A stretch of DNA of 64,000 bases from Euprymna scolopes (GCA_053919585.1 CM132801.1); one strand, 5' to 3'; shown: positions 1 to 39,799, numbered from the stretch's first letter. The notes: generated from the letters alone by a model not told the origin. Translations and numbers: made by a program.

Positions 1-62
1 GCTAATGAAGCCAGGGTGGCTCCAGTCGCTGGGTTCGAATCTATCGACTAGCGTTAATCGTG

Positions 63-114
63 ACACCCTGAACTGATGATTCCCGAACGGATGAAACACT
101 AGTGTCTGTTGGTA
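63..114 (+). ncRNA. Type I hammerhead ribozyme motif (family 1, copy 1)
   Basis: CTGATGA(73-79) t TCC cgaac GGA t GAAA CACTAGTG TC. Stem III palindrome ACACTAGTGT; GUC site; stem I partly degraded. Confidence 0.7.
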
Positions 115-395
115 TTTAATAATTATTATAGTAAATCATTATGTCAGCTCCTTTAAGAAACTCGTTGAGCACTTTTAGTTGAATTAAAAAGTCGGTCAAT
201 TTAGCTCTTATGTATAGATCATCATATAATGATTAGATCACTGTGACAGGCGTTAAAAAGCATTTAAAAAATAAATGTTTAAACTTCAACAAATTTCTCG
301 CGGTTAACAATAGCCGAACGGATTGTGCCATTGCTAATGAAGCCAGAAATGGCTTCTGTCGCTGGGTTCGAATCTATCGACTAATGTTAATCATG

Positions 396-447
396 ACACC
401 TTGCACTGATGATTCCCGAAAAGATCAAACACTAGTGTCTGTAGGTA
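396..447 (+). ncRNA. Type I hammerhead ribozyme motif (family 1, copy 2; G12>C, stem II degraded)
   Basis: ccttgca CTGATGA(406-412)...CAAA CACTAGTG TC tgtagg. Stem I pairs (tgca/tgta, cc/gg). Confidence 0.6.
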
Positions 448-574
448 TTTAATAATTATTATAGTAAATAATTATATGTGTGTGTATGTGTGTGTTTGTG
501 CATGTGTGTGTATGTGTGTGAGCGAGATAGAGACACTAGAAATATCATGAGTGAGAGAAAGGGAGACATTTATA

Positions 575-1205
575 TAATAACAATATCAAAGAGACAGAAA
601 AGCGGAGCGAATACATGGAACTGGCCAGAGAGCTCAAAAGGATATGAAAGATGAAGAAAGTCAAGATAATACCAATAATAGTAGGAGTACTAGGAACAAT
701 GCCAAAAATCTTTTTGAAAAATAGGAGAGATTGGAATCGAGGGATGGCTGAGAATATACAAAGGATAACAATGATGAAAACAACTGAAATAATAACGAAA
801 ATCCTTCGAATGTGAAGAGTAACACACATGAGCTACATGCGCAAGCCGGACATATAGAAACTGCTACGGATGTAAATCTCAAAGAAATACCACATCGAAT
901 CATGAAAACTGAAATTTTATAATTGTAAGTTAACCCCTGCATCCTTGCCATTCGCGCTCTGTCTTACCTCCCAATTTTTTGTGCCACTATAACTAGTACT
1001 ACGCCAAATAAGTGAGGAGGATCAAGGAAGATGGAAAGATAAAGTACTAACCAGACCTCCACTGGATAAATGCGAAGAGGACTGGGACCTTGAAGAGGCT
1101 TAATGCCACTAAAATCCCAGTAAAGACTAATGGTCGCTACCAACGAGAAATCAATGGTAAACGGCTATTTTGCGATAACGCAAGCTATTTTGCAATTATT
1201 ATTAG
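575..1205 (+). mobile_element. R4/Dong-type (RLE) non-LTR retrotransposon 3' fragment
   Basis: Translates KETEKRSEYMELARELKRI*KMKKVKIIPIIVGVLGTMPK, the C-terminal RLE region; homologous to 9060-9280 (-). 1040-1140 resembles 6420-6590 (-). Confidence 0.7.
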
Positions 1206-1383
1206 AATAGGTGGTGAGTACTGCAAATCTGGGAAGACATGTCACTTATACTCCATCTGATATCACACAAAATACGCGTAAAATGTCAAGGATAGTAGAA
1301 TGACTGAGAGAGGAAACAATAACCGACTTTTACTGAATGAGTGTGAAGAGTTACAGGACTTTGGAGAGTTTTTTTTTTTTTTT

Positions 1384-3650
1384 ACACAGTGGTCACCACT
1401 TATCAAGGCCCGGAAGCCACTCAGGGATAAGGGTTATTGCAAGTACATTACGTTAGTGTGGAGATTTGATGAAGTGTTTAATTAAGGGGGCGGTTAATAT
1501 GTTAACGTTGGACTTGAACACATCCAAGTTGTAGTCAGGTGGAAAGCAGGCAGACGAAACAGAGTTCTACAGGCGTGCAGTTCTAAGAAAGAAGCTTTGT
1601 TCATGGAATCCACGTTTTGTTTTAGGCACAGATAAAGAGTGGGGGAAATTTTTCACAGTGGATTCGGCCAGACGAGTGTTTTTTGTGAAAGATTGGCGAG
1701 GGGGGACCAGAGATTGGAGTTCAGACGAGCACCTACCATGGAAATAACGATAAAACAAGGATAGGATCGCAACGTCTCTTCTGTGGGAGAGAGGTTGTAG
1801 GGTAGAGAAAAGAGCATACCCCACTAAGCCACGAAGTCTATTTTATACTCTGTCAAGGCAGGATAGGCTGTTTTTAGCAGCTCCTGCCCAGATATGGCAG
1901 CAGTATTCCATCCTTGGACGTACTTGGCTTTTATATAAATAGAGAATTGCATCAGTAGTGAGATATCTTCTGGCGCGGTAGAAGGATCCCACCATCTTTC
2001 CAGCGACCTTGGCAACAGACTTGATGTACGTGTTCCATTTCAGATCAGGAGTAAAGGTCAAACCAGAAGCTTGTCAAAACACGGGGCCTCACCCAGACGA
2101 GAGCACTCCATCTCAATTGATGCCAGATGGGGATCAGAGCGTTGATGATGTAAGGATAGGAGTTTGGTTTTAGATGCATTAAAGGTAACCAGCCACGTCT
2201 TCCCCCACTGAACCACGCGCTCGAGATCAGAGGAGAGAGAATCAGAGAGAACTTTGTCATTTACAGTCTTTGATGTGTTGCCATAGATGGTCGTGTCATC
2301 AGCATAGATGTCAACGAATGATTTAAGTATGTGTTTAGGGAGGTCATTGATGTAGATCAGGAAGAGAGTTGGGCCCAGGATTGACCCCTGAGGGACTCCA
2401 GCATTAATACTGCAGGCCTCTGATTTTTGTCCATCGACCACTACTCTTATGAGCCTATCGGAGAGAAATGATTTAATGATTGAGAAAACATTTCCAGTTA
2501 TACCGTAGCTGGAAATCTTGTGAAGTAGACCCTTATGCCATACCTTATCGAAGGCTTTTCATATGTCAAGAGAAATTGCCATAGAAAGGAAACCTTTGTC
2601 AGGAGATTCACTAATCCTGTGAGATATAACCGTCAGCACATCTGCGGTAGATCTTGCAGAGCGGAAACCATATTGTGTGTCACTAAGAAGGTTATTCCTG
2701 CTGAGGTGGTTGACTATTTCTCTATTTAATATGGATTCCAGCAACTTACTCATAACACACAGGAGACTTATTGGTCTGTACTGAGAGGGATATGATTTAT
2801 CACCTGAATTCTTAAATACAGGACAAACTGATGAGGTCTTCCAGGGAGTCGGACAGCACTTCTCCTTAAGGCAGCGCTTAAACAGTTTCGTAAGTATGGG
2901 AGCAAGTTCTGGTTGAAGCTTTTTTAACACTATAATTGGGATGCCATCAGGGCCAGTTGCTTTACTGGAATCAAGGTTCTTGATTAGCTTGGCGATCTCA
3001 TGCACGGATATTTGTATTTTACCTAGCGTGTTCTGTGTTATAGGAGGAAATATGGGGAGTTGATGGCCTTCGTCGCATAGGGTAGAATTAGCTGCAAAGT
3101 TCTTTGCAAATAGTTTGGCCTTGTCTGACGCTGACGAGATGACCTCTGGTCCATTGATAATGGTTGGGATAGAACGCACACTTCTGTTCAGGATCCTATT
3201 TGTTATTTGCCAAAACTGGTGGGAACCAAGCCGCTGATCAGCTACCTTGGATTTAACAGACTGGGCATATAGCTCACTTGCATTTTTTATTACTCTTTTA
3301 CAGTGGTTGCTGGCAGCCCTGAAAGCAGCCTTAGTCTCAGTGCATCTATTACGTTGGTAGCTATGAAAAAAGTGATTTCTGTGCGCGATAGCAGCAGCAT
3401 ATTCTGGGGAGAACCATGGCTGGCTGTTAGGTTTTTGTTGGAATTTTTTAGATGGTATGAATTGGTCTATGCCTACAATTAACCATTCGGTCAGATCTGA
3501 TACTATAGAGGACACTTCCTTTTTAAACATGGAGTACAGAGGTAAATCAGATATGAATGTACGGAAGCTTTGCCAGTCAGCCATAGAGTATCGGTATACA
3601 GTACGGTGGAGGGGTACGTCTGGGGTTATTGCCACGCAAATTCCAGGGCA
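1384..3650 (-). mobile_element. CR1/Jockey-group LINE, 5'-truncated, frameshifted ORF2 (RT)
   Basis: ORFs 2559-3686, 2058-2441, 1843-2061, 1567-1824 with KATGPDGIP, YRPISLL, QYGFR, GVPQGSILGP, YADD, RPRMEYCCHIW, LSHRRDVA. 3' UTR ends at an A-tail (T-run ~1369-1383). Confidence 0.95.
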
Positions 3651-4805
3651 GATCAATCGCCGTTGCGAGCTAAAAATAAATGGCAAGCTGCCGTTCTGCT
3701 AACAAATAGTTATAAAAAATGTTGGCGCTTACTGAAAATCTGGCGAAACTTTTTAGTTCCCAGATTTAAGGAAACACCCCCATTTGTTCTCAGTTAGTAA
3801 TCTCTGATGTTCGTCTGCGTGAAAATTCCTGGTATGTACCAATAATACTAAGTAAACTAAAGCGGTAGGGAAGGTGAGGAAAAAAGGAAGAAGAGAAATA
3901 CGACCGTAAAAGAAGATAACTAAGAAAGAAACAAAGCACGAAAACAAAATATACTAGTAAACGAAGGCCGACTGATAGGGTATACTATACATCACAAAAT
4001 ACAAAATAGAACCTTTAAAAACAAAACAAAGCGTAAAAGAGGTAAAAACAAAAATTAAACAACGAAGACTGAAAGAAACATCTTAACACTACTGGCGCAA
4101 TATATGGGAAAGATGATGATTTTAAATGATACTGACTGTCTTAATAATTTTAGTGTGTGTGGATGCCACACTGATGGTTGTGGTCACAATTTATTTAGTG
4201 GTAGTGGTGACAGTGATATCTACAACAGCTTCAACACACTGATATACCCGATAATACCATAGGAAAGTGTAGATCGAAATAGACGGAAAACCGAAAGAGA
4301 AACAAAAGACTAAAGAGAATTTCGCGAGAAAGAAAATGGAAATGAAACGAAACGGACTTTGTTAATCGAATTAACACAAACAACGAAATAAAAATAAAGA
4401 AACAGTAACGAACGAGAAAACAAAAACGGGTAAATCTCCGAAAATAAACGGCTTTGCTATCCAGTCAGGCTGAAGTAAATGTCTCTCTTGATTCGCTTGA
4501 TACGAAAGTTGCAGCGTCAATCTAATAAGTTGCTAGAGCACATGCCACTGACACACAGCGAACAAGAAATGGTGATATGTCCCTATGTCAGTAAGGGATG
4601 GTGTGTAACGTATGATTAGCATGAACTCATATCATTCTATCTCTTCACCATCTCTTCATTTCTTCATCTTCTATCATCAGGCTTCAGTTTTTTCTTCACA
4701 TATCTATCCATTTTTACGCATCACACTGAATATATATAGATGTGTGTATGAAAGTGTATATGTATACACACACGTGTGTATATATATACACGTGTGTGTA
4801 CATAC

Positions 4806-4853
<48 letters not shown>

Positions 4854-5104
4854 TCTCAACACATATTGAGAGAGATGCAAAGAGCGACAGCGGGAGAGAA
4901 AGATGTACAGCGAAATAAATGTAGCTATTTTGGAATAATATATATTGTGCTTAANNNNNNNNNNNNNNNNNNNNNNNNNNNNNNNNNNNNNNNNNNNNNN
5001 NNNNNNNNNNNNNNNNNNNNNNNNNNNNNNNNNNNNNNNNNNNNNNNNNNNNNNNNNNNNNNNNNNNNNNNNNNNNNNNNNNNNNNNNNNNNNNNNNNNN
5101 NNNN

Positions 5105-5753
5105 ATGGTTGACTATTTTGAAAAACCGATTACATATAATTCTAGAAGATTTATCGAGACACGGGAATGGGTATATTTGATCTGGCAGAAGGATGGTTCA
5201 TTAAAATTGTGGGGTCTGCGTTCGCGCCTGGTCCACAAAGTATGGAAATAAAAAAAAATAAAAATTAATTAAAAAAATGCTTGCAAGTGTTTTTGATATA
5301 GATGTACATAATAATACTTTGATGAGTATGTTTTCACTTAAATAAGGATGGTATAATAAAATTGTGGGGTCTGCGTTCTCGTCTGGCCCCCATAGAATGG
5401 AAATAGGCACAAACTTTAATAAAGTCTTTTTCTATCTATCTGCGTAAGTATACTTTGATAATTATGTTTCAGTTTGAAGAAATGTGGTATAATAAAATTA
5501 TGCGGTGTTCATGTACATCTATATCAAAAACACTTGTAAATGTTTTTTTTTTATTTTTAAATTTTTTATTTCTATACTTTGTAGACCAGGTGCGTACACA
5601 GACCCCACAATTTTAATGAATCATAATTATGCAAGATCAAACATACCCATTCCTGTGTCTCGATACATCTTCTATCATTATATGAGATCAGGTTTCTATA
5701 ATAGTCAACCATATAGAGCCTATTCGTGACCAGACACACACACAGACGTTCAG

Positions 5754-5760
<7 letters not shown>
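5105..5760. mobile_element. Foldback/MITE-like element with long imperfect inverted arms
   Basis: 5105-5260 (atggttgactatt...tcgagacacgggaatgggtat...attgtggggtctg) is the reverse complement of ~5560-5712; ends in acacacagac..(TA)n. Confidence 0.6.
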
Positions 5761-5799
<39 letters not shown>

Positions 5800-5809
<10 letters not shown>

Positions 5810-5855
5810 TTCATAAGTTTTTGTTTCGGCTTCGATTCAAGCTGATGCATTCAAG

Positions 5856-5920
<65 letters not shown>

Positions 5921-6290
5921 TTTTGAAATCGCAACATTATAATATATAAAAATCGATAGAACATTAACTTTATAATAATATATACGAAATCTGCAAGAAT
6001 TAAAATGCCATATTTAAGCGAACATTATGATCTGGCTAGACGTCACATCCTCCTTATATTACCTAGAATCTTCTCTACTCTTCTGATGAGAAGCATTAGG
6101 CGTCGAAATACCTTGGTATAAAGAGTCCTCTTTATCCCCCAACTAAATGTATGTATATCCTTACTAGCTTCGATAACAAAAGAGCTACAATAATATCAGA
6201 GCGTCTCCATTTATGCTGAACATCTACAGAATGCCAACATCAATATATTACATATGAATAAGTCCCCTGTGGAATTTCCACAGGTCCTGC
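5800..6290 (+). repeat. Dispersed repeat, paralog of 12340-12695, interrupted by a hammerhead-bearing segment
   Basis: Shared gtttcggcttcgattcaagctgatgca ... aaagagctacaataatat ... atttccacaggt blocks. Confidence 0.7.
6077..6126 (+). ncRNA. Type I hammerhead ribozyme, near-canonical
   Basis: Stem I ACTCTT/AAGAGT; CTGATGA; stem II GAaGC-attag-GCgTC (one mismatch); GAAA; stem III ATACC-tt-GGTAT; AUA cleavage triplet. Confidence 0.85.
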
Positions 6291-6318
6291 TAGTTATTAT
6301 TATTATTATTATTATTAT

Positions 6319-6319
<1 letters not shown>

Positions 6320-6360
<41 letters not shown>

Positions 6361-6620
6361 CTTAAAAGGTGCTTTGAAATAAAGCTATCATAAAGGATCT
6401 CTCCTTGAAAATAGCCTGTGGCGTTCTCTGGAAGCTGAGTAACAACAAGTCTCTCTAGTTTTCCAGTGCTCTTCACCTCTTCTGATAACATTTGCAAATT
6501 AATTTGCATCAGCCGACTACCATTGATCTCTCGCTAGCAGCTAGTAGTCTCCACTGTCCAGATGAGGTCTGGCCAGTGCTCTCTCCTCCATCCATCTTTT
6601 GCCCTTCTCGGCTATTTGGT
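6320..6620 (-). mobile_element. R4/Dong-like 3' end with (TAC)n/(TAA)n tail
   Basis: Similar to 1040-1140 and abuts the (TTA)n/(TAG)n microsatellite, as expected for TAA-targeting RLE elements. Confidence 0.45.
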
Positions 6621-6812
6621 AGCATTCTTTTGTAGGGAGCGGTGATTGAGTAATGGGAGAATGGGGGAGGGGATGGTGGAGGGATAGAGAACTTATGAAT
6701 ATGTATCTTCTATGTTCTTGGTTCCATATAACTCTTCTTCATATTGTTGTGTAGCCGGGTGTTCATATTGTGGTGACATATATCGAGTACTTTTTAAAGA
6801 GAGACGGGGACA

Positions 6813-7713
6813 TGTAATACACGATGAGGGAGGGATACATGAGAGAGGCATTTATACAGTTCTGTGAATGTTTCTTCTTTTAACAGAATGAGTTATCAGT
6901 TCTTTTATCGCATATATTAGAGAGAGGAGGAGACCAGGTAATAAACAGTTCTTATAACACAAAAGTGGAGACACATTTCTTAGATGAGTTATACACAATG
7001 TTCATTAATAACGATGAGTGGACACAATGTTCATATAAAGATGGGTTTCACATTACCTTTAGTTGTTGTATAATGACCAACACGAAGACGCAGTTACAAA
7101 ATTTTGATAATATCGTTTATTCATGCGACCGGTCAATGATTGATGACATTCAGAAATTCAAAGTCACTACATGATTACACTTCTAACCCTTCGCTTCCAA
7201 AGGGGCACTCCTTCTGACCAACGTCAGCTCTGTCTCCCGTCTGTCCAACCCTGACTCTGTCTGTCCGACTCTGTCTCCGTTCTTCTGTTTCTATCTCAAA
7301 CTAGCAACTATATTGAGAATTCATTTCTCAGCCATGACGTCATCGCATGACCAAAAACGTGTTCGATCGATCCCAGAGCCTGAACATGCGCGATCCTCAC
7401 ATGCATAATTCGCACATCTAACCCATTTCTTCTAACCTATTTTCGACCTGACTTATTTTCCAACATATTTAAATTTGCTATTGTTCGTTCTCTTAACTGA
7501 CCTTGTTTTAATTCAATTTTCATTTAAAGAATTGAATAATTAAATTCCTTTTCAAACCACATATCTAAACTATTTTATGTGAAAACTAAACAATGGGTAA
7601 TTCTACATTCAATTTTCCGAATCCATTTCAGAACCTATTTCTGAACCTAGATTACCAAGTTCAATTCTCGGTATATCCTATCTCATTTTTACTTATTTAA
7701 TGTTTTTCTTACA
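6813..7713 (-). mobile_element. LTR-like repeat, paralog of 33442-34110
   Basis: TGTAA...TTACA ends. Shares tgacgtcatggc..ttctcaatatag..agagtcaggg..ggaagcga..accggtcg..aataaac with 33780-34000. 7633-7700 recurs at 8919-8987 ending TGTAACA. No TSD seen. Confidence 0.45.
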
Positions 7714-9039
7714 AGAAAAGAGGACCTCCCCTCTTCATTTTCAAAAAATGTACGCATTTTTAAATTCAGTGCATTTTTCTCTATATCTACAAAACCACTC
7801 GGCTAAGAAAAATCACGCACCCCCCAAAAAAAACTCTCCTTTAATCAGCCCTTTCCAACTGACTTCACAATTTATTTATTTATTTATTTAGATCAGACTC
7901 TCTCCGATCTTCTTGGCATTTACTTTTTGGGTGTAGGTTATTTCTCCCTTGATTCACGTCAGCTGCTTCATCCAGCCACCCTTATGCTGTAAACGCGAGG
8001 TCTCATTTTACCTCTTTCAAAATCGACGACTTCTTTTCATCCAAAAGTGTCCTGACCGTTTCTTTTGCCTGGTTGTTCTATTAAGTGTGGCTTTGTTCCA
8101 TTTTGTAACTATTTTATCTTTTTCGTGACATACTCAAAGATCATTTACTTACATCTTTGTGGTTGGCTTCCAATTATTAAGATATACCTTTTAATCACAC
8201 TGATTCACTTAGATTTCCTTGCTTGAACCCTTGGAACTTGATGAAGATTTAGAAAATATCACCCTTAACCATCCCTTGTACCACAATTCCTATATGCGCA
8301 CTAAATTCTAACTATGGCCCGATTTCCGTGATTTTTCTTTTTTTTCTCATCAGAGCTTCCTAGATCCAGCAGATATATCCCGCATTCATGCATATATATA
8401 TATATCAGGTGATATCTTCCTACGTACATACGGTATATTTTACTTTTCTCTCGACTCATTATGCTATATATGATTTGCCTGTGGTACTGACTCTCATAGT
8501 CCTTATGGTACCCTAAGGATTCTCGTATCCTTCACCGTCTACATTTAATTTATTGAACCAAAACTTACTACCCTGTTGGGAGTCATTACTTGCGACCAGC
8601 TTGTAAGCGCCCAATTTTTCACAGGATCCATTATTTTTTCGAACAAGTCATTTCTAATGCTTACCCGGCAAGCTACATATCTTGCGAAAAAATGTTTATG
8701 GACTTTCAAAAAAATACTAAAAGCAAATATTAAAAAAGAAAATCTCTCTTTCGGCCTAGCACATCTCAAAAATACCCATTTACGTAATTTTCTATTTTGT
8801 CCCTCTCTAAAATTCTAAGTTATTTCTAGGCCAACCATCTGTTTTATTTTCCTATAGCTTGTTCTTTCCATTTTATTGTATATACCTAATTATGACTTTA
8901 AATTCCTGTCGTAAAAATACCTATTTCTGAACCCAGATTACCAAGTTCAATTTTCGGTCAATCCTATCTCATTTTTACTTATTTAACCTTTTCTTGTAAC
9001 AATATTTTGTCTCTGCAGCAGTTCGTCTGATCCGCGCAT

Positions 9040-10300: not shown

Positions 10301-10729
10301 GTATCATTATTATTATTATCATTATTATTTTATTATTATTACTATTATTATTATTATTATTATTTGTACTAACAAGTTCTCACGTATGATATCATCTCAT
10401 ATTGCACACTGATAATAACTGGTGTTTCCTGAAGGGTGGGTGACAAACGTCTCCATATTTCCATATATGCACCTCTTTTGATAACCTCTGAAACTACTTT
10501 GCATTATCATGAAAGCTGCTTACCATTGATTTCTCCCTANNNNNNNNNNNNNNNNNNNNNNNNNNNNNNNNNNNNNNNNNNNNNNNNNNNNNNNNNNNNN
10601 NNNNNNNNNNNNNNNNNNNNNNNNNNNNNNNNNNNNNNNNNNNNNNNNNNNNNNNNNNNNNNNNNNNNNNNNNNNNNNNNNNNNNNNNNNNNNNNNNNNN
10701 NNNNNNNNNNNNNNNNNNNNNNNNNNNNN

Positions 10730-11465: not shown

Positions 11466-11527
<62 letters not shown>

Positions 11528-11628
11528 TGTTTTTTATGACATTTCATGTTCGCCTGTACATTATCAACTTATTATAAATTAAAAAATGTAAGATCGTTGG
11601 ATCAGCAAAGGTGTTTATTAGTGATAAA

Positions 11629-12790: not shown

Positions 12791-12846
<56 letters not shown>

Positions 12847-21546: not shown

Positions 21547-21604
<58 letters not shown>

Positions 21605-21745
21605 TTTGTTGTTGATTTTTTTAACGATATTAAGGTTAACGTCTCAGCCTCGGAGATCCGGTGTTTTTTTTTATTAGAAAGTCGCCCATTTTTTATTTGG
21701 ACATATTTTTTATTTGTTTATTTATTATTTTTAAAAACAGTAATA

Positions 21746-21787
21746 TACGGGCACGCGTGTTTCAGAGCCCTACTCCCCTTCAGCGTA
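21746..21787 (-). ncRNA. Type I hammerhead motif (family 2, copy A; A9>G, U16.1>C)
   Basis: TACG CTGAAGG GGAG taggg CTCT GAAA CACGCGTG CC CGTA. Confidence 0.7.
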
Positions 21788-22055
21788 GTTTAAATCTTGT
21801 TGGGATTCGAACCCCGGACCTTATGTATTTCAGTCCAGCGCCCTAACCCATTACGCTATGATGACATAGACAATTTACTGTTTTAGTTTTTTTTTTATCG
21901 TTTATCTGTTTACATAGTTTTGTTGTTGATTTTTTAAACGATATTAAGGTTAACGTCTCCGCCTCGGAGATCCGGTGTTTTTCTTAGAAAGTCGCCCATT
22001 TTTTATTTGGACGTATTTTTTATTTATTTATTTATTATTTTTTAAAACAGTAATT

Positions 22056-22097
22056 TATGGACACGCGTGTTTCAGAGCCCTACTACTCTTCAGCGTA
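22056..22097 (-). ncRNA. Type I hammerhead motif (family 2, copy B; intact core)
   Basis: TACG CTGAAGA GtAG taggg CTCT GAAA CACGCGTG TC CaTA; palindrome ACACGCGTGT. Confidence 0.75.
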
Positions 22098-22635
22098 GCT
22101 GGACTGTTGTTGGTATTTGAACCCCGGACCTTATGTATTTCAGTCCAGCGCCCTAACCCATTACGCTATAATGACATAGACAATTTACTGTTTAGTTGTT
22201 ATCGTTTATCTGTTTACGTAGTTTGTTGTTGANNNNNNNNNNNNNNNNNNNNNNNNNNNNNNNNNNNNNNNNNNNNNNNNNNNNNNNNNNNNNNNNNNNN
22301 NNNNNNNNNNNNNNNNNNNNNNNNNNNNNNNNNNNNNNNNNNNNNNNNNNNNNNNNNNNNNGTATGAGGTTCCGCCAAAACAACCAAGTTGTTCGGAAAT
22401 CCAGAGAAGATTTGTTTATAGTGGTGAAGACCTTGTGTAGAACCATCCACACTTTTTGGTATTACTGCTGACCTTTGTCGGTGCAGACAACTGCCACAGG
22501 ACAGAGTATACAGTAAACCGCAGGTTTTTACATCAGAATAGATGTCTTAACGAAGACTGGGGGTGAGTCTCTCCCAGTGAATTAATGCGCCCTCAGATAC
22601 CAACCTGGAAATTTCTACGACTCGACGTGGGGTAC

Positions 22636-22745
22636 ACACAGCACCTAGACTGCCCAAATGGTCACCCATCTTGTACTGGCCAGGCTCAACGTGCCTTAAC
22701 TTCTGTGATCTGGCGAGAATCGGTGTGTCAACGAGATTGTGTCGT

Positions 22746-22747
<2 letters not shown>
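22636..22747 (-). pseudogene. 5S rRNA-derived sequence (SINE3-like head or pseudogene)
   Basis: acgac..cgttgacacaccgattctcgccagatcacagaagttaag..gagcctggccagtac..gatgggtgacc..ggtgctgt matches the metazoan 5S layout. Confidence 0.85.
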
Positions 22748-22808
<61 letters not shown>

Positions 22809-22949
22809 CGTATGTGTGTGTGCGCGCGCGCTCGTGCATGTTTTATTGAAGAGATAATTTCTGTTTGTTTCTCTTGCAATCCATTTTTTCTCTTTTGGCG
22901 GGAGAATGTTCGAACGTTCTGTTCGAATATAAAAAGAAATTTGCCATAG

Positions 22950-24323: not shown

Positions 24324-24883
24324 TAAACCTCGGCGTCTGAGTGATTGTGTTTAAGAGCTTGGGTTCCTAACTACGTCACGAGTGTATAAATTTATACACG
24401 CCTTGCTAAGCAAACATTTCACATAATGATATAGCTGGACTATGACTTTTATACTGTGAAATAGAAAAGATCTGAAGTTGGATTTCAGTTGCTGACAATA
24501 TTTTAGCATAGCTAATCGCCGTGTAAGGTTGTCGACATATTTGTTCACTTAACAAACAAGTGCCACGTTTGAATGTTGTTCCGATATCAACTTTTAATTA
24601 ATGAAATAGATATCCAGTAGTTCATATATTTAATAATAGGTTGGTTAAAAAATAATGTCGTTTTTTATATATTATATAAGTTGAACGTCAAAAACATTAT
24701 TTTTTCACTAACCTAATAGCTAAACATTCAAATTGTCGTCATCTCCTTTTACACCTGAGACGGAAATCAAAAGAACATATTTGAATAAGACTAAAAAAAG
24801 AAGGACTTATACAGAATCCGTATTAAGAATACAGAACTTATTTCGTAAAAGTGTTCCGCCACTCATAAAAAATGTGTTATTAA

Positions 24884-25063
24884 TAGGGACGTGACAACAG
24901 CATATTCTTTTCATTGTTTTGACTCTTGAGTATATAGCCGTTAATATCTTATACGTTTTTATATAGATCGATGTGGTACTCGGTTGGTTAAGTGTATCTA
25001 ACTGTGTCGGGTATATACTTGAGAGTCAAAAGATGAAAAGAATATTCTGTTGTAACAGACCTA
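24884..25063. mobile_element. MITE (paralog of 11629-11789)
   Basis: tagggacgtgacaacagcatattcttttc / gaaaagaatattctgttgtaacagaccta. Confidence 0.8.
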
Positions 25064-26071: not shown

Positions 26072-26830
26072 CATTTATACGAATGTTTATATATATTTTT
26101 TAAAACTTACACTCTAACCTATCATGGTTTTAACATTATAAAATAAGTTAATATTAAGTAAACTACTGTTGCTTATTCTTAAAAAATATTTTATTTATTA
26201 TTTCTCCCAACGTTTTTGAAGTATAACTTTAATTTGTATGTTTAATAGTATTTTTAATTACTTATTGAATATATTTACCGTTTATATTTTCTTATTTTTA
26301 TGAAAAGTCTTATAATTTTTTTTTATATCATTGCTCGCTCTTTATTATTGCTATCATGATTTTAAACGATAATGACTATCAGTATTATTAGATTACATTA
26401 TTATATATAAGTCTCTATTTCATGTCCATACCTTATATCTTTTCTTTATTTTCTTATTGCTATTTATGTTATAATTAACTCACTAGAAGTATTCACACAA
26501 GCCATCATCAAAGGTTGTTCTTTGAGAATAACTTGTGGTGTTTCCTGGAGTCTGAGTGACAACAAGTTTCCCCAGATTTCCAGTACTCTCCGCCTCCAAA
26601 TGTCGTTGTTAGAGAAAAAAGGAGTCGAATCATTACTTGTCTTATGTTCATTGCGACATAATCTGCTACAACGTGTTGTATCTACGTGTGTAAACATGTG
26701 TAACGATACAATAGTAGTCCATTTATAAAAAAGTCTTTCTGTTATTTTAAAAGACTAGGGGAATGGAAAATGAAAAAAAAGAACGAGGTATTAGGAAAAA
26801 AACAAAAAGGTTGTAGCAAGATGTACACCC

Positions 26831-26889
<59 letters not shown>

Positions 26890-26893
<4 letters not shown>

Positions 26894-26944
26894 TACACAT
26901 ACAGTACTGTTTCGCTGTTTCACAGCTCATCAGTGGGGCTAGAC
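26890..26944 (-). ncRNA. Type I hammerhead (family 3, intact core)
   Basis: CA CTGATGA GCTGT gaa ACAGC GAAA CAGTACTG TA TG; palindrome ACAGTACTGT. Confidence 0.8.
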
Positions 26945-27171
26945 AAGCAATTACCTCGAGCCAGGATCGAGACCCGACTGCCCAAAAAACAGTCGGGGCT
27001 CTTAACCATTGCGCTATTCGACTGTTGCTATGCTGACAGCAAATTAACAATGTTTTGACATTGTCCAAATACCTAAGCTCAATTTGTTTACACAAAGAGC
27101 ATCGCTTAATACGCTAATGGGGACTTGTATATCTCTTCCCAATATTCTCAACCCAAGATAGGGAGCATTAT

Positions 27172-27227
27172 AGTCATCCACAGACAGTACTGGTTCGCTG
27201 TTTCACAGCTCATTAGTGCGGCTAGAC
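27172..27227 (-). ncRNA. Type I hammerhead (family 3, core mutated, stems intact)
   Basis: gtctag CCGCA CTaATGA GCTGT gaa ACAGC GAAc CAGTACTG TC TGTGG atgac; extended bulged stem I. Confidence 0.7.
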
Positions 27228-28434
27228 AAGCAACTACCTCAAGCCAGGATTGAAACCCGACTATATATTTGTGCGTGTGCTATCAAAGAGTAAATCTTTA
27301 ACAAAGTAGAGCTTATCCAGATAAAAAAAAACCAACACTATTAAGAGGAAGAAGCAGTAATATTAAATTAAAAATGAGGAATATGTAAGTTTGTATCATC
27401 AAAACAATAAGAGGAAAATTAAGAAAAAAAAGACATCTTTAGGTAAATGCTTCTCATCAGAAGAGGAAAGTGACCAAACTATACAAAACGCAAATATAGA
27501 AAATACTGGCTTAACGACATTTAGATATGAAATAGGGATATTATCTGACAAAAAAATAATTAAAAGTAGGTACAACAGATAAGAGTAAATCGGAAGGGTA
27601 GTATATAAGTAGGTAATAGCAAAAAGAAAAATATGGTTCACTATGAAATAATGGAGATTATTAAAGAGAAATTGAAAAGCTAGGGAAGAGAGATGAAAAA
27701 GTATAGAAAGAATGAAGGAGGATAAAAAAACAGTAATTATACAGAAATGAATAAATGGATAAAAATAAAAAATATGAAACAATCTGATAGTGGAAAAATA
27801 GGATTAGAAAAATGTTCAAAAAGTTTGAAAAAATCAAATAAAAATGTATATATGCAAGTTTCAGTTCGAAATGCCATGGTCTTAAGGGCTGTTTTATTTT
27901 TACTTTTCCCTGTTACTTTTTCTTCTTGTACAAAACAAATATATATCTTGACAAGGACGAGTTTTTTAGTTGAAATATATCTTTCAATACGATGTTTTTA
28001 TTATTTTTTTTTTGCGTTGGATGGCTTCAAAACGTATTAAAAATTATATATGTATACAAGTTCCAGTTCAAAATGTCATGATCTAAAAAGTTTTTCACAC
28101 TTTTCCTTGTTACTTTCCTTGTTGTTCTGATGATATANNNNNNNNNNNNNNNNNNNNNNNNNNNNNNNNNNNNNNNNNNNNNNNNNNNNNNNNNNNNNNN
28201 NNNNNNNNNNNNNNNNNNNNNNNNNNNNNNNNNNNNNNNNNNNNNNNNNNNNNNNNNNNNNNNNNNNNNNNNNNNNNNAAGGGATACAATTTTAAAACCT
28301 AATATTTATTAGAAATAACAACTGTGAAAAGCTGAAATTTTGACAACTGGTAGTCGTTATCATCCATAATAACATACTAAAATTTGAATCATTTGCAAAA
28401 GATAGAAAAGAATTATAACAATTTTATATATATT

Positions 28435-28516
<82 letters not shown>

Positions 28517-28752: not shown

Positions 28753-28814
<62 letters not shown>

Positions 28815-28820
<6 letters not shown>

Positions 28821-32300: not shown

Positions 32301-33372
32301 TTTTCCAAGTCTTCCTTACCTCCCTCCACCGAAGCCCCTATCATTCTTTTTTCCTCCCCTTTGAATCCGCCCTCCACCACGCCATTCTCATTGGTGGACA
32401 GCGTCCTTTGAAAAGGGCAAGATTTCCCGCGCCTTTATTGTTCTGCGTCCGCTCGTTTATTAAGCGAAGTTTATTGTGATGACGTAGTTGAGCTAATTGA
32501 TTCTTTACATTCATTCCGTGAGTGTCTTTTCGAAATTGACAACATACATTGGCAGTCATGCGTCTTAATAGACCTTATATTGCTGGATAGGACACAATCT
32601 GTATCACCGTTCCCAACGTAGTTTCTGTGTTCCACAAGACGCACTTTAAAAACACACATACGCACGTGTATGCATAGTATAAGTTTATATTTATAAAAAC
32701 ATTGTTGCTATATATGTGCATACGTGAGTCAACTACGATCTTATTCAAAGTGTAGTTTCTTCGGGCGACTAATAGGAATCTTTTCTGTCAGTGGAATGAA
32801 AAATAAAAAGAATACGTCGGAGCTGAGACGTGTATGTTTATATCGATACACATTTATACTAAATCTAGTAAGCCGTTCGGCATTGCCCGGTCTTGAAATA
32901 CACATAAATATTTTTGAATTTATACAGATTTAATAGTATTATAATTATAGAGCCAATTCTCTACTGATTGTTTTGTATTAGTGATTTGAAAATGTTTAAA
33001 AAAATAATGATTTCGGTGACATCAGCTAAAATCGAAACTAAAACCTATAACTTTCCAACATAATTCGTTATCATTTGAGCTTAGTCCATACGCATATAAA
33101 ACTTTAAAAAATAATGTTATTAAATGTATACATATATATTTCCGCATGCGTAAAAATAACACGGTTAGTCGACTTACGCCAGTCAGGTTCCATTTTTTTT
33201 TTTTAATTTTAACCTCTAAGCAGCATTTTTTTTTTATCCAAATAAAACTTGTTCTATAAGTCCAAATCTCTTATTTATAAAGTCTGTAGACCAAAAATTG
33301 ACAGAGTAGTTTGGTAGAGACCGTTTCACACACAGACAGAAAAACAAGGTCACATCCATATATATATGTATG

Positions 33373-33409
<37 letters not shown>

Positions 33410-33441
33410 AGAAAGATAAATAGAAAGATAGATAGATAGAT

Positions 33442-34110
33442 ATGTTACATGATAAGGGCTATTCCCTTTTCATGTAAGTAAAAATAAAGAGAATTAGTTA
33501 AATGAAAATGATATCAGATAAAACGAGGATTGAACCATGTAGATAGGTTTTAAAGAACAATAGGTTTAAATAGAATGACCAGTTAAATTATTGATTCTGT
33601 TAAAATATTTCATGAATACAATTTGGATGGAAAAAACTATTCACATTCTTAGAAAGAATGCATAATAAAAATATCGGTTACAGAATTAACAAGTAGGTTA
33701 AAATTCATGGTCGTCAGAAATGGTTTCAAAAACGTGCAAATCGCGCATGCTTGATACACGTGAATTGTGGTCACGTTGCTGTGACGTCATGGCAGGAATG
33801 ATTTCTCAATATAGGGAAGGGTTCAAATTTAGTTAGAGAAGAAGAGAATCAGATCAGTCAGACCAGAGAAACAGAGAGGTTCAGACCGATTCTCGGTTAG
33901 AGTCAGGGCACCCTCTGGGAAGCGAGAGGTTTAGAGGTAACCATGTAAACAAGTTTGAATCCCTGAAATGAAGCAATCATTTCCGACCGGTCGAAAAATA
34001 AACAACTTCATCTTTTTATATCTGCGTCTTCTTGTTATGTTTTCAACAGAAAAGGTATTGTCCATTATGTTATAAGAACTTGTGAAAATCATCATCTCAA
34101 AAATAGGTAA
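33442..34110 (+). mobile_element. LTR-like repeat (paralog of 6813-7713)
   Basis: Starts TGTTACA; shared internal blocks and AATAAA; right boundary uncertain. Confidence 0.4.
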
Positions 34111-34257
34111 GAAATATTATATGTACAACTGTGAAACGTAAATGCCAAACGCACTATCTCTCAGTCTATCTATCAATATATCATAAATCTCATCTCATTA
34201 AATTACATACTCGGCTCACTTGTATTAACATGAACACTGTCTATTATATATACAGAA

Positions 34258-34293
<36 letters not shown>

Positions 34294-34482
34294 TGATATA
34301 TGCGCGATATATTTGCACACAACATGAACACACTAAGACTCTTACTAACATGAACAACAACAATACACACATCTAAAATATAATCCCATGCAGATAAAGC
34401 TCTCTCTCTGTTATTGTGCACTATCTTATAAAGCTGTTACTCAGAGGGATCAACACCTATTAACTAAATACCCTGCAAACGT

Positions 34483-34554
<72 letters not shown>

Positions 34555-34611
34555 TATGTTTTTAACTCTTTTTCAAGATGTCTTTTAACATGTTTTATTA
34601 ATCATTTGTTC

Positions 34612-34645
<34 letters not shown>

Positions 34646-34770
34646 ATAATTATAAAGAAACGTGTAGTGCTAATGCATATTTCAATATAATTTATTTTCA
34701 AAATGCCACAATTAATCAAACTTAATTATGAATTTACACTTTCAGAGCATATATATATATATATATATAT

Positions 34771-34805
<35 letters not shown>

Positions 34806-35225
34806 TTAGCATAGGCGTCCGGCGTTGCCCGGGTGTTTGGATGTGTATGTTGAGCAAAAGAAAAAAAGTGGTAGTAGGAAGACAGGCTCGAACCCGTACC
34901 GCAAAGGAGGAAAAGAACGGGGTAAAACCTGACGTTTATGCTGTTTCGACCACCGCCAAACCGGAAGCGACATTTTTTTTTTAAATTAAGGCTAGACAAT
35001 CTAAAGGAGAAAATAACTTTTAAAAATATCGGCTAAAAAAAGTGACACCCCGTGTAGAAAAGTGCATAGTTGAAGGCGAAGATATTCATGTTTTTAGCCA
35101 ATGTTTCGATATTTGTCGTATGAAAGATCGAACTTTAAAACGATACTGATCTTCGTAAAATCCGTCGCATCTATTGAAAGTTTAATGAAGACATGCAAAC
35201 AGACATACATACATACATTCATATA
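34806..35225 (+). mobile_element. Helitron-like repeat family B
   Basis: ttagcataggcgtccggcgttgcccgggtgtttgg head, (CATA)n tail. Confidence 0.6.
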
Positions 35226-35229
35226 TTAG

Positions 35230-35677
35230 TAACTAAAATTTTTCGACCCAAACTGATGAAAAAGCTTGCCCTACCTCTGAATATCCTTTATGTAAAATTT
35301 CAAATATTTAGACCAGAAATTGTCTGAGTAATTTGGAAGAAACCGCAGAGGTCAATTTATTTTAACTTTGGACCCTATTATGACCTCTTAAAATTTATTG
35401 TTTTGGACTCAAATCAAGTTATTAAGTTAGATCCATGTCCAAGGAACCTATATCTAAAATTTCTAGTGCGTAGACCAAAAATTGTCGGAGGAGTGTGGTA
35501 GAGTTCTCAAAGGTAAAAAGGTTGAACTTTGACCTCTTAATCACTAAATTTCTGGCATTTTCCCAAATCTCAGTACCCTGTATATCAAATTTCGAGTCTG
35601 TAGACTAAAAATTGACAGAGTTATTGCGTAGGGAAATGTACACAGACACACAGACACACAGATACACGATATGTTCA

Positions 35678-35685
<8 letters not shown>
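35230..35685 (+). mobile_element. Helitron-like repeat family A (partial)
   Basis: Same subrepeats and acacagac..ttcactttta tail as 10730-11465. Confidence 0.55.
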
Positions 35686-35724
<39 letters not shown>

Positions 35725-35790
35725 AGTAAACATACCAAACTAAAGATGCATTACATCACACTTATTTTATTTTATTAGGAGTATAGTTCG

Positions 35791-35843
35791 TCTTACATGT
35801 GTTTCGTTAAATGTTGAAAATTCACCAAACAACTCATCAGAGA
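35791..35843 (-). ncRNA. Type I hammerhead motif with long loop II (pLTR-like family 5)
   Basis: TCT CTGATGA GTT...AAC GAAA CACaTG TA AGA. Confidence 0.7.
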
Positions 35844-36040
35844 TAGATTTATGTTTTTGAAAAAAAGACATAGATATTTTTTAATCTGATTGAATTTAGG
35901 GTTGTTATTATAATTAATATTTACAAATAACCTCTCCTAGATTTATAAATGATTTACTGCCTTCAGTCATTTTCTTAGCCTAAATATAAAACTCATGAAT
36001 GTGGCTTAGATTGTACTGAATTCAAATATGGCGATATATA

Positions 36041-37599
36041 CACTGCATGTCAAATTGTTAATGAGATAACGTTTTTTTACCAATTTTAGAAACTTATCGG
36101 TAGTTTCGTATCAAAAGCTTCGGAAACGTTGGCAATGCTGAGCTGCGTGTACTGTAAAATTTTCGTACTGTTCCGAGCAATGAAAACAACTTGCCATCGT
36201 AATTGCTGAATCCACGGAATTTGAAGTGTGTCAAATTATTAACAAGGCAGTTTGTTTCGTCAATAAAATGGGTCGTAAAGACAGTTTGAGTAGTTCTGAA
36301 AAGAGTACTATTACAGAACAGCTAGCAAAAGGTAAAAATACCCTCGAAATATCGAAAATGATAGGAAGGTACCATCAAACTGTGAAGAACTTTGTCAAGA
36401 ACCCTACAAAGGTACTAAAGAGAGTTGATAAAGGTTAATCTAGAGTTCTCTACTCCAAATTAAACGTGAATTTGTTAAGAACCTTGGGCAGACAAGTCGG
36501 GAAGTCTTTGACCAAGCCGGATTGAAGAATGTCTAAAAAAGTACTCGATGTCGCCTTCTGAAAAGAAGTGGCAAAGTCGGTTAAGCCCGTGACAAAGCCT
36601 TCATTAAAGCAATATCATATACAAAACCGATTGAAATTGGCAGATGACAACATTAAAACGGAGTTTTCCAAAGTTTAGTTCACGGATGAAGTGCGTATGT
36701 GTCTTGATGGCCCAGACGGCTGGAGCAAAAGATGGATCCTAGATGGACGACATCTTCATCAGCGTTTAAGGCGCCAACAAGGTGGCGGTGGGATAATAAT
36801 TTGGGCTGTGATTATCGGAGATATTTAGTTGGCCCATAGAGAGTCCCAGAAGGCGTAAAAATGACATCAAATGCTTACATAGCTTTTCTGAAGGAGCACT
36901 TTGAACCATGGCTGAATAAGCAAAGGTTGACGTTCAGAAGAACTATTGTTTTTATGCGTGATAATGCTCCCTCGCATGCAGCAAACAAAAGCAAAGAGTA
37001 TTTGCAACAACTGGGGTTCTCTGGGCTACGGAAGATGGAGTGGTCTGCGAATTCACCAGATTTGAACCCAATTGAAAACCTTTGGAGTATCATGAAGTGA
37101 CACTTCTATACAAGAGGACGCCACTTTAAGAGCAAAGATGAGTTGTGAGATGCTCTCCAAGAGGTATCGCGAGGAATAACTGTTGCCGAATTCACAAATG
37201 TGACTAATTCTGTGGACAAACGTCTTTTACAAGTCATTCATAAAAAAGGACCGCATATTCCCGACTAATTATGTCAACATAGAAATTGCTTTGTAGTTAT
37301 TGTGTTCTAAGCATTTTTCCTAGTTCATTTAATGTTTGAAAATTATTTCAATAAAAAAGTTATGACTATATTGTGTTTTTTCTCAACCTCATTCATAACT
37401 TGACACATCGAAATCAGCAGCTATTCCTATCTATATATACCTATATAGTTTTGCTAATACTCATTGAAATACTTTTATTTTCTGACTGGAGTAGCTGAAT
37501 AGTATTGTAAGCACTTCCTCAAAGTTTCATAAATTTTTATTCACTGGTTCCTTAAATATTAAAAAAAATGTATACTCGTTAATAATTTGATACGCAGTT
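36041..37599 (+). mobile_element. Tc1-like (DD34E) transposon, full length, transposase pseudogene ~36268-37268
   Basis: Imperfect TIRs cactgcatgtcaaattgttaatgag / ctcgttaataatttgatacgcagtt flanked by TA. Motifs FTDE, DNAPSH, SPDLNPIENLW; several stops. Confidence 0.93.
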
Positions 37600-37806
37600 T
37601 AAATAATGAGTCTTCTCGTGTGCACTGGATTCCAAAGCGTGATTTTTTTTTTTTACTCAAGAAGGGTTCAAACAAATTATATAACAACTAAGATTTTTAT
37701 CCTTATGACTTTAAAGGGTTACTGTTTCCTCCCATCATTTTTTTTTTCTTTTTAAACTAAGGAAAACATCTCTAACTGTATCTTTTTACAGAGGAACATA
37801 GATCAG

Positions 37807-37859
37807 TTTCTGGTGAGCTTTTCGGTGAATTTCCACGATTTAACGAAACACGTGTCAGG
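37807..37859 (+). ncRNA. Type I hammerhead motif, family 5 (A6>G)
   Basis: ttt CTGgTGA GcT...AAC GAAA CACGTG TC agg; palindrome ACACGTGT. Confidence 0.6.
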
Positions 37860-38359
37860 CGAAGTATACTACTAAAATAAAATGAGCGCGATGTAAATGC
37901 AATTTTGGTTTGGTATTTTTACTTCCGATATCTGTACTATTATATAAAAGAAACTATATCTGTGTGTGTGAAAATGCCCACATTTTCTTTGGTTCCATAT
38001 GGACTCCATAATGGCTGGGCCAATTTTTTCACATAATTAAGCGATTGTGATTAAACTTAGCATCTTATACAACATAATACAAAAAAATGAAAAATCAACC
38101 TATAAACAAAAAGCGAAAAGTTGCTAAATGTATCGTATNNNNNNNNNNNNNNNNNNNNNNNNNNNNNNNNNNNNNNNNNNNNNNNNNNNNNNNNNNNNNN
38201 NNNNNNNNNNNNNNNNNNNNNNNNNNNNNNNNNNNNNNNNNNNNNNNNNNNNNNNNNNNNNNNNNNNNNNNNNNNNTCTTTTTCGATGAATACTACGAAA
38301 CATCTTTGATGATGCTGTGACTTGAGCATAAAATTATTTAGACAAGAGTTTCGCAATCT

Positions 38360-38560
38360 ACAACCACACTTCTCGTGAGTCGGCACCATTAACTACCAAT
38401 AGCAGGTACAAATTTCAGGATGACTGGAAACAATATAGAGATAAGCGGAGCGCACATACAGTGCCTGCTATTTTTAAACAGTCACCATCTGGTACTGGCC
38501 AGGCTCATCCTTGCTTAACTTCGGTGATCTAATGATAATCGATATGTTAACGTAATTATG

Positions 38561-38565
<5 letters not shown>
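38360..38565 (-). mobile_element. 5S-derived SINE (SINE3-like)
   Basis: Degenerate 5S head 38457-38565 plus a ~100 bp body shared with 43780-43874. Confidence 0.75.
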
Positions 38566-38631
<66 letters not shown>

Positions 38632-39228
38632 AGAGAGAAGATGAGGTAGATGGCGACAATAAGTAGTTTTCGACTAACAAGTACCTTAATATTTGATAAA
38701 AATCACCCTAGTCTCAAATATCCTAACATTTAACCAAACAAAACATATATTCGATAACTTTATATAAATAGCACCAAAGTTTTTATCTCATAAACAAAAG
38801 GAATCTAAATGGATTTTAAAACTGAACACAGAAACCAGGTCGGAAGTTCGATGAATGTGTGTTTTTTAACAATTTTACAGTTAGAAATATCTAGTTTTGA
38901 CAACACATACTTTTTGATGTGATCTAATATGGCTGGAAGATATAACACAAACAAAAAGTACAGAAGTAATCGCTGACAGTGGTTGCTTTTGCACGTCGTT
39001 TCTTTTCTCGCTTTGACTTATTGGCGATAAGAACTCTATTCATAGAGCCAGTAAGAGTCCACAAAAGTATGATAAATTATTATAACACACCCTGTTTATA
39101 TTTTTGTACATTTATTTATTTGAGGACTGTTATTCTCATCTTCATAGTTATGATTGCTTAATCAATAGTTATTATAATTACTGGGAGAACATTTTACAAA
39201 CTTCAATATTCTTTTTCCGTCGCGTTAA

Positions 39229-39274
39229 TCACCTGAAAAAACGGCCAGAGAATGAGCTGCCCGAAAAGTAGCGA
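39229..39274 (+). ncRNA. Degenerate type I hammerhead (family 4, copy 1)
   Basis: TCAC CTGAAaA..GGcCAG agaatgag CTGcCC GAAA agTA GcGA. Confidence 0.5.
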
Positions 39275-39661
39275 AGCAACAACAACTATGACGATGAAGG
39301 TAACATTCCACAAATAAATAAATAAATTACTCATCTCAAATGATTCCAATAGAGCATAATATATTATACCATTCGCTACAGACTTGACAATGGAAGATTA
39401 GATAAGAATAATATATCTGGATTTGTAAGACCAAAACATACAACCTTGATCGCCCTTCGGAGCCCGTGGCGTAGTGAATAAAGTCGTTAAATCTCTACAG
39501 TTTCAGGTGAGTATTGTCTGAAGGTAGCAGTTTCAATCCTACCCAAAGCAGGCCAGAGGTTTAGTTGGTCAAAAGGTGGTGAAACAACAACAATTATGGA
39601 AAGCAGTAATTACTGGGGGATACAGTTATGAGACTCAGCATTCCTATCTTGTCGCGATTAA

Positions 39662-39705
39662 TCACCTGAAGAAGGGCAGAGGATGAGTTGGCCAAAACGT
39701 TGTGA
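39662..39705 (+). ncRNA. Degenerate type I hammerhead (family 4, copy 2; G12>A)
   Basis: TCAC CTGAAGA a GGgCAG aggatgag TTGGCC aAAA CG TT GTGA; palindrome AACGTT. Confidence 0.6.
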
Positions 39706-39799
39706 AGCAACACCAATTATGAAGATGAGCATAACAATCCGCAAATAGATTAAAACACACATTTTCAGTATTTCTCCACATTAATCGTTATTAAGTTCT

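Follow-up and report, generated by a model that had tools for sequence, protein, structure and literature searches.

Tandem arrays in the window and their hammerheads

The 64,000-nt window analyzed here (the whole stretch of Euprymna scolopes DNA, GCA_053919585.1 CM132801.1) contains four short tandem repeats, each combining tRNA-like A-box and B-box motifs with a hammerhead ribozyme motif. We assign them to four families, F1–F4. The F1 direct repeat pairs 17–142 with 350–475 (spacing 333, 90% identity). The F2 repeat spans 21604–22224 with a period of 310 and 2.1 copies, and Tandem Repeats Finder detects the same repeat. In F3, the segment 26886–26979 is repeated at 27169–27262 (spacing 283, 89% identity), and in F4 the segment 39238–39322 is repeated at 39669–39753 (spacing 431, 76% identity). 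These positions agree with the original prediction, made from the sequence alone, of four direct repeats. The prediction described them as tandem repeats. Direct repeats are indeed present, but they form partial tandems of 1.3–2.1 units rather than long arrays.

The F1 insertion covers 1–475 on the plus strand, which corresponds to ~1.5 units of 333–344 nt. It starts ~41–63 nt ahead of window position 1, where (AT)n precedes it in the flank of locus L001. Its 3′ end lies 36 nt past the cut site, and (TG)n comes next at 477–520. The F2 insertion covers 21604–22232 on the minus strand with at least 2.1 units of 300–310 nt. Its 3′ end at 21604 adjoins (AT)n at 21553–21601 and its 5′ side runs into an N gap at 22233. 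This gap (22233–22361) is the only one touching an array, and because it cuts the 5′ side, the length of the F2 array is a minimum. The remaining assembly gaps fall between arrays; continuity over them is immaterial because the arrays are independent insertions. The F3 insertion covers 26886–27262 on the minus strand (1.33 units of 283 nt), and its 3′ end at 26886 adjoins (AT)n at 26833–26889. The F4 insertion covers 39170–39753 on the plus strand (~1.3 units of 431 nt). It stands head-to-head with an inverted, 5′-truncated partial copy at 39110–39159 on the minus strand, which comprises the tail only.

The four arrays match one another only over motif-sized stretches (9–19 nt), at the B box and at the hammerhead core, and A/B boxes lie upstream of the hammerhead in each. 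The earlier description of dissimilar sequences sharing one architecture is therefore correct. The repeats had also been described as free of open reading frames (ORFs), and those ORFs that overlap the arrays have no Pfam match. The units are short (283–431 nt for F1–F4) and tandem, the GC content is low (37–44% for F1–F3), and each unit has one type I hammerhead, as in the metazoan retrozymes that lack long terminal repeats (LTRs).

A hammerhead descriptor gives 11 overlapping matches at five separate places in the window, compared with 0.55 in shuffled sequence. Two of the eight array hammerheads, 73–106 (plus) and 26933–26900 (minus), have an intact core and intact helices. Five of the other six have core mutations. 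The window copies are decayed, with a single intact ribozyme left in F1 and another in F3. The intact F1 copy contains CUGAUGA at 73–79 and GAAAC at 93–97, with a predicted cut after C106. Its helix II (80–92) includes a U10.1·U11.1 mismatch, and the palindrome ACACUAGUGU occupies 96–105. The second F1 copy (406–439, plus) is dead, with G12 changed to C and a change in helix II. In F2, the downstream copy (21750–21783, minus) is dead owing to A9 to G, C11.1 to U and U16.1 to C. The upstream F2 copy (22060–22093, minus) keeps the core (CUGAAGA ... GAAAC ACGCGU GUC), with helix II weakened by two changes. The 3′-terminal F3 copy (26900–26933, minus) is fully canonical, with CUGAUGA, helix II GCUGU/ACAGC and GAAAC. 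Its palindrome is ACAGUACUGU, and the predicted cut after A at 26900 leaves a 14-nt tail (26899–26886). The upstream partial F3 copy (27183–27216, minus) is dead, reading CUAAUGA and GAACC. Both F4 copies are minimal hammerheads and dead. Copy a (39233–39270, plus) carries G8 to A and C15.2 to A, copy b (39666–39701, plus) carries G12 to A, and the helix II module is present a second time, lacking a core, at 39551–39598 (plus). A GAUGAG stretch in F4 was tried as the ribozyme core and rejected, because the better copy L059 and the genome pattern put the core at the upstream CUGAYGA.

Other hammerheads lie outside the four arrays. A fifth family (CUGAUGAG...) is represented by two 5′-truncated copies at 35794–35840 (minus) and 42798–42844 (plus), with helix III ACAUGU or ACGCGU and a GUA cut site; each copy ends in (TA)n ~90–100 nt downstream. 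At 42456–42619, a hairpin insertion consists of two inverted 61-nt arms that are 90% complementary and 42 nt apart. Each arm contains an outward-reading minimal hammerhead with helix III ACAUGU (42530–42485, minus, and 42547–42590, plus). The right arm ends in (TA)n, and the whole is a Penelope-style head-to-head structure.

Ribozyme conservation and insertion anatomy across the genome

Majority sequences were built from ~30 copies each of F1, F2 and F3. The majority hammerhead reads CUGAUGA / UUCC-CGAAA-GGAU / GAAAC / ACUAGU / GUC in F1, CUGAAGA / GGAG-UAGGG-CUCC / GAAAC / ACGCGU / GUC in F2, and CUGAUGA / GCUGU-GAA-ACAGC / GAAAC / AGUACU / GUA in F3. In all three, helix III lies within a 10-nt palindrome and helix I has 5–6 bp. 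The F4 family form, CUGAYGA-A-GGCCA...UGGCC-GAAAC-GUH, is taken from copy L059 and the genome pattern, because every F4 copy in the window is mutated. The type I core (C3-U4-G5-A6-N7-G8-A9, G12-A13-A14, A15.1-U16.1 and H17) is found in the F1–F3 majority sequences and in the F4 genome pattern. The original expectation of a type I hammerhead with a self-complementary stem III is right for F1–F3 and has to be amended for F4, whose hammerhead is of the minimal type (ACGU, without stem-loop III).

These ribozymes are abundant. The exact 34-mer of the F3 ribozyme has 8,364 genome matches, the F1 pattern 2,638 and the F4 family form 7,851, while the reversed-pattern control for F3 and the controls for F1 and F4 give 0. 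Exact-word counts were also considered as a measure of selection, since the F3 spacer 34-mer has 490 matches and the head 34-mer only 22. The ratio was not used. The low head and spacer counts arise mainly because the majority sequence comes from an old subfamily, and the head of the young subfamily differs.

Covariation was evaluated in an ungapped alignment of 42 copies of F1–F3, which represent three independent lineages rather than 42. Pairing as in the hammerhead structure is seen in 87% of the cells, compared with 20–48% when the partners are slid. Two-sided changes occur in 7 of the 13 pairs across F1–F3, and helix II pairs use three Watson–Crick types. The covariation score is 0.456 versus 0.193 in shuffles, and none of 500 shuffles scores as high. 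The F1–F3 majority sequences thus carry the conserved core with co-varying helices I and II, which is what the original prediction needed from family consensi. It had also proposed that a palindromic stem III allows a double hammerhead. Cofolding of two copies with ViennaRNA predicts just this arrangement, held by a 10-bp intermolecular helix III, and the predicted dimer is more stable than two monomers by 6.6 kcal/mol for F1, 9.2 for F3 and 15.3 for F2.

The families are dispersed. A first look at the 5.9-Gb assembly gives 6,173 F1, 3,358 F2, 3,567 F3 and 8,392 F4 candidates over all large contigs, and genome copies are 76–90% identical to the window copies. Together with thousands of intact ribozymes, these numbers agree well with the proposal of several independent retrozyme families of the short interspersed nuclear element (SINE) kind. 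Insertion anatomy was examined at ~30 loci per family, chosen as the best full-unit matches. The F3 3′ end lies 14 nt past the cut in 29 of 30 loci, and the F1 3′ end 36 nt past the cut in 18 of 29; F2 has one major and one minor terminus. The 5′ ends vary among the sampled insertions. Most of these are 1.0–1.5 units long and consist of a 5′-truncated copy followed by a full copy. (TA)n follows ~23 of the 30 F3 insertions and roughly one in two F1 insertions, and it often precedes them as well. Inverted 5′-truncated copies in head-to-head orientation occur at several F2 loci, as in the window F4 at 39110–39159, and F4 ribozymes form many divergent pairs 80–590 bp apart genome-wide. The young F3 subfamily forms arrays of at least 5 units with 284-bp spacing and identical heads and ribozymes (for example G000:C1:119510740-119511978).

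Penelope-like elements are described as often truncated at the 5′ end, forming partial tandems (pseudo-LTRs), having inverted copies next to them and preferring (TA)n (PMC8557442). Their pseudo-LTRs carry a minimal hammerhead that lacks loop III, leaves one base unpaired 5′ of stem II, has a short helix I and occurs in opposed pairs (PMC4209133). The insertions analyzed here agree with the published anatomy, having a constant 3′ end, truncated 5′ ends, partial tandems, inverted copies and microsatellite targets. The genome contains 15,396 GIY-YIG candidates, and 150 of the 150 scored pass the Pfam cut-off; their open frames reach 870 aa and often occur as inverted pairs. Mobilization by a Penelope-like reverse transcriptase (RT), as originally suggested, fits the insertion anatomy and the GIY-YIG frames in the genome; the partner enzyme itself we infer. 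The further suggestion that relics of such an RT lie in the same window finds no support in the 25 ORFs of at least 110 aa that were scanned. The sole RT relic found (2058–3686, minus) has RVT_1 in two ORFs and is broken, and it is a long interspersed nuclear element (LINE), because its homologues carry apurinic/apyrimidinic endonuclease (APE)-type domains (PF14529 and PF03372).

tRNA-related heads, proposed life cycle and alternatives

A strict scan for an A box plus a B box gives two hits in the window, in F1 and F2, compared with 0.02 in shuffles. The F1 head (311–375, plus) has an A box at 311–321 (TAGCCGAACGG) and a B box at 365–375 (GGTTCGAATCT), 54 nt apart, and a second B box lies in the upstream copy at 32–42 (plus). 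The F2 head (21803–21858, minus) has an A box at 21858–21848 (TAGCGTAATGG) and a B box at 21813–21803 (GGTTCGAATCC), 45 nt apart. The F3 head (26964–27016, minus) has a perfect A box at 27016–27006 (TAGCGCAATGG) and an imperfect B box at 26975–26964 with one extra base. In the F4 head (plus), the A box at 39467–39477 matches at 10 of 11 positions and the B-box-like segment at 39529–39539 at 9 of 11. The tRNA-like boxes of the original prediction are thus strict in F1 and F2, whereas F3 and F4 combine a good A box with an imperfect B box. An A-box motif lies 60–85 nt upstream of 5,656 F3-type ribozymes genome-wide, and the exact A box of the window subfamily in only 309, so the A box is kept across F3 subfamilies with differing surroundings. 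The head of the young F3 subfamily is TAGCGTAATGG...GGTTTCAATCC, and its unusual B-box variant GTTTCAATCC also occurs in F4. Overall, we regard the heads as tRNA-related segments that resemble promoters but in which no tRNA is recognizable.

We propose that each repeat represents one old insertion and that the four belong to different families of non-autonomous, non-coding retroelements, with the unit plan and life cycle described here; we put the probability of this reading at about 0.8. The proposed unit begins with the A/B-box segment, continues with the type I hammerhead and its palindromic helix III, and closes with a short tail at which insertions terminate, with the AT-rich spacer completing the unit. 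A genomic copy would be transcribed either by RNA polymerase III (Pol III) from its own A/B boxes or by read-through. Hammerheads one unit apart would then pair through the palindromic helix III, cut, and release unit-length RNA, which host tRNA ligase could circularize. This step is modeled on the predicted folding and on published work on mussel, coral and axolotl elements. A putative Penelope-like RT/GIY-YIG enzyme would finally use the RNA, in linear or circular form, as the template for target-primed reverse transcription at nicked (TA)n tracts. Insertions made by such a route would share a constant 3′ end, differ in their 5′ truncation, form partial tandems of 1.0–1.5 units (at times at least 5) and occasionally include head-to-head copies.

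Several results weigh against this reading. At the ribozyme level, the Rfam models Hammerhead_1, HH9 and Hammerhead_3 give no match at the gathering score; the best scores are 22–24.5 bits versus cut-offs of 34–52, for the window and 20 family loci at permissive thresholds. Sub-threshold scores are expected, because these are variants with a short palindromic helix III. The U·U at 10.1/11.1 is the F1 family state and may weaken catalysis. At the level of the head, the B boxes of F3 and F4 depart from the motif at sites that matter for TFIIIC. ARAGORN calls a tRNA neither in the window nor in any majority sequence, except in F1 when relaxed to -ps80, and nothing in the window and 20 family loci matches the Rfam tRNA model at E up to 1. 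Detectors of the kind named by the original prediction, for hammerheads and for tRNAs, were thus negative apart from that F1 call. Sense-strand T4 runs are not significantly avoided (P = 0.06, 0.2 and 0.9). In the polyA reads, ends are not enriched at 26899/26900 or at the F2 cut sites, where depth is low. The length distributions are biased, because the sampled loci are the best full-unit matches. As for the enzyme, the 25 scanned window ORFs of at least 110 aa show no Penelope feature, and inspection by eye of the long open frames in ~300 kb of sampled flanks reveals no obvious Penelope-type frame.

The RNA data come from polyA libraries, with reads placed at ≥85% likeness; a search for runs of any other kind turned up none. 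On F3 the read depth reaches ~485 with a 5:1 strand bias, which is readable only with the library type, and F2 is barely covered. Because the DNA itself is tandem, circle junctions are indistinguishable from genomic sequence in the reads. The polyA reads are uninformative here and neither support nor refute cleavage, circles or Pol III drive.

A bold version of the proposed scheme holds that four or more unrelated Penelope-dependent hammerhead elements each independently gained a tRNA-derived Pol III promoter and are self-transcribing "Pol III retrozymes". We consider this doubtful. The same elements may instead carry a head that does not work as a promoter and be transcribed by read-through from neighboring genes, a route proposed for metazoan retrozymes at large, the boxes being a relic or serving RNA folding or the recruitment of tRNA-processing enzymes or ligase; we hold this to be a real possibility at odds somewhat short of even. 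The failure of the heads in tRNA detectors and the imperfect F3 and F4 B boxes fit such a view, as do metazoan retrozymes, which seem to be promoter-less (PMC7761336). The F3-like reads in polyA RNA, with their strand bias, fit embedding in RNA polymerase II transcripts. In F1 and F2, the head sets no limit to the 5′ ends of the insertions, in a sample biased to full units. The F3 insertions of the same sample behave otherwise: in 28 of 30 loci the upstream partial copy does not reach past the start of the head, and two copies stop precisely at it, which would fit a transcript starting at this position, a limit that F1 and F2 lack. A head without promoter function is also harder to reconcile with at least four unrelated families that keep A/B boxes at tRNA-like spacing (42–62 nt) in the same place 5′ of the ribozyme, and with the persistence of the A box across F3 subfamilies whose neighboring sequence has diverged.

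Two further explanations depart from the proposed elements altogether. The SINEs described from squid and cuttlefish have tRNA heads and are related to RTE (PMC5786205), the window contains the RT relic of an APE-type LINE at 2058–3686, and LINE-type target-primed reverse transcription also produces fixed 3′ ends with 5′ truncation. The arrays might accordingly be ordinary tRNA-derived SINEs moved by APE-type LINEs (RTE, CR1), like the Ceph-SINEs, with the hammerhead-like stretch as a conserved body domain. This seems improbable to us. Penelope elements are marked by partial tandems, head-to-head copies and a preference for (TA)n (PMC8557442), all atypical of LINE-borne SINEs, the F4 ribozyme is of the Penelope minimal type (PMC4209133), and ribozyme cores with covarying helices are retained in unrelated families. 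By inspection, the Ceph-domain motif CCTTGGGAAAG is absent from the F1–F3 majority sequences. The adjoining microsatellites and the longer young F3 arrays elsewhere in the genome could suggest satellite DNA amplified locally through replication slippage or unequal crossing-over, with no retrotransposition. We give this very little credence, since thousands of short arrays are dispersed over all chromosomes. The arrays are not satellites, because dispersed loci have a fixed 3′ terminus in common together with variable 5′ truncation and partial tandems.

The window contains several other elements. At gathering thresholds, its only Rfam matches are 5S rRNA-like elements. Three 5S rRNA-like heads, all on the minus strand, lie at 22633–22749 (46.9 bits), 43871–43987 (47.9 bits) and 38452–38569 (35.3 bits); standing beside (TA)n tracts, they are probably 5S-derived SINEs. 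The 5S-like element at 22362–22880 has a polyA depth of 200–350, and variant joints point to subfamilies. An ORF at 54495–54866 (plus) has a partial match to a mariner-like DDE transposase (Transposase_1, 27.5 bits). High polyA depth is also seen at 24849–25045 (250–350) and at 26425–26818 (85–125 with a strong strand bias). Most reads there continue into unlike sequence, so these segments are other expressed repeat families.

Relation to known hammerhead elements

The design of a head joined to a hammerhead is already known, from Sm-alpha in 1998 and from metazoan retrozymes, and F1–F4 are new members. Sm-alpha and Sj-alpha of Schistosoma follow the plan of a tRNA-derived head plus hammerhead (Ferbeyre et al. 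1998; Laha et al. 2000; as cited in PMC2770079). Sm-alpha and Sj-alpha resemble F1–F4 in their short non-coding unit (~330 nt), in a tRNA-derived head with Pol III boxes upstream of a type I hammerhead, and in a very high copy number in tandem and dispersed form. F1–F4 differ in being molluscan rather than flatworm elements, in having no sequence relation to Sm-alpha and Sj-alpha, and in comprising at least four unrelated families in one genome. They also show (TA)n insertion, Penelope-style partial tandems and inverted copies.

Metazoan non-LTR retrozymes are known in mussels (Cervera and de la Pena 2020, PMC7229834). Their tandem units of 170–400 bp, lack of an ORF and thousands of copies compare with F1–F4 and their GC content below 45% with F1–F3, and their type I hammerhead acts as a dimer through a palindromic helix III, as predicted for F1–F3. 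According to a 2020 review, retrozymes seem to lack promoters and any motif that would identify the autonomous partner (PMC7761336). F1–F4 differ from the published elements in the A/B boxes adjoining the ribozyme. Circular RNA has been demonstrated for the published retrozymes, whereas F1–F4 are known here from sequence. A Penelope origin of vertebrate hammerhead elements has also been argued (2026 preprint, 10.64898/2026.07.22.740005).

The minimal hammerheads of Penelope elements (PMC4209133; 2017 work cited in PMC7761336) closely match those of F4 and the hairpin insertion at 42456–42619. They share a loop III of none or 2 nt, a base left unpaired 5′ of stem II, a helix II of 5–6 bp, a helix I of 4 bp and opposed pairs 100–700 bp apart. 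Unlike the Penelope elements, F4 and the hairpin insertion lack an RT/GIY-YIG ORF between the copies and have a tRNA-like head attached. Newt satellite 2 and plant LTR retrozymes resemble the present proposal in that their hammerhead repeats are processed to unit-length or circular RNA, with dimeric cleavage in newt. The plant elements differ in having true LTRs, a primer-binding site, a polypurine tract and type III hammerheads, and newt satellite 2 differs in forming long satellites. In cephalopods, the tRNA-headed, RTE-related Ceph-SINEs are not reported with ribozymes (PMC5786205), and the giant squid paper counts 235 Rfam hammerhead hits only (PMC6962438). We found no paper in the literature describing the F1–F4 families or the head-plus-hammerhead design in cephalopods.

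Animal hammerhead repeats yield abundant small circular RNAs, and both their transcription route and their mobilizing enzyme are standing questions. Here, several families that are unrelated to one another have arrived at a common head-plus-ribozyme plan, and their young copies number in the tens of thousands. If the heads were indeed working Pol III promoters, a partial tandem would supply a promoter and two ribozymes for excising and circularizing the unit RNA. Pol III retrozymes would then contradict the published promoter-less view of animal retrozymes and name the partner enzyme. Since the insertion signatures are clearly of the Penelope type and the families have converged, Pol III dependence and Penelope tail sharing are both testable in one organism.

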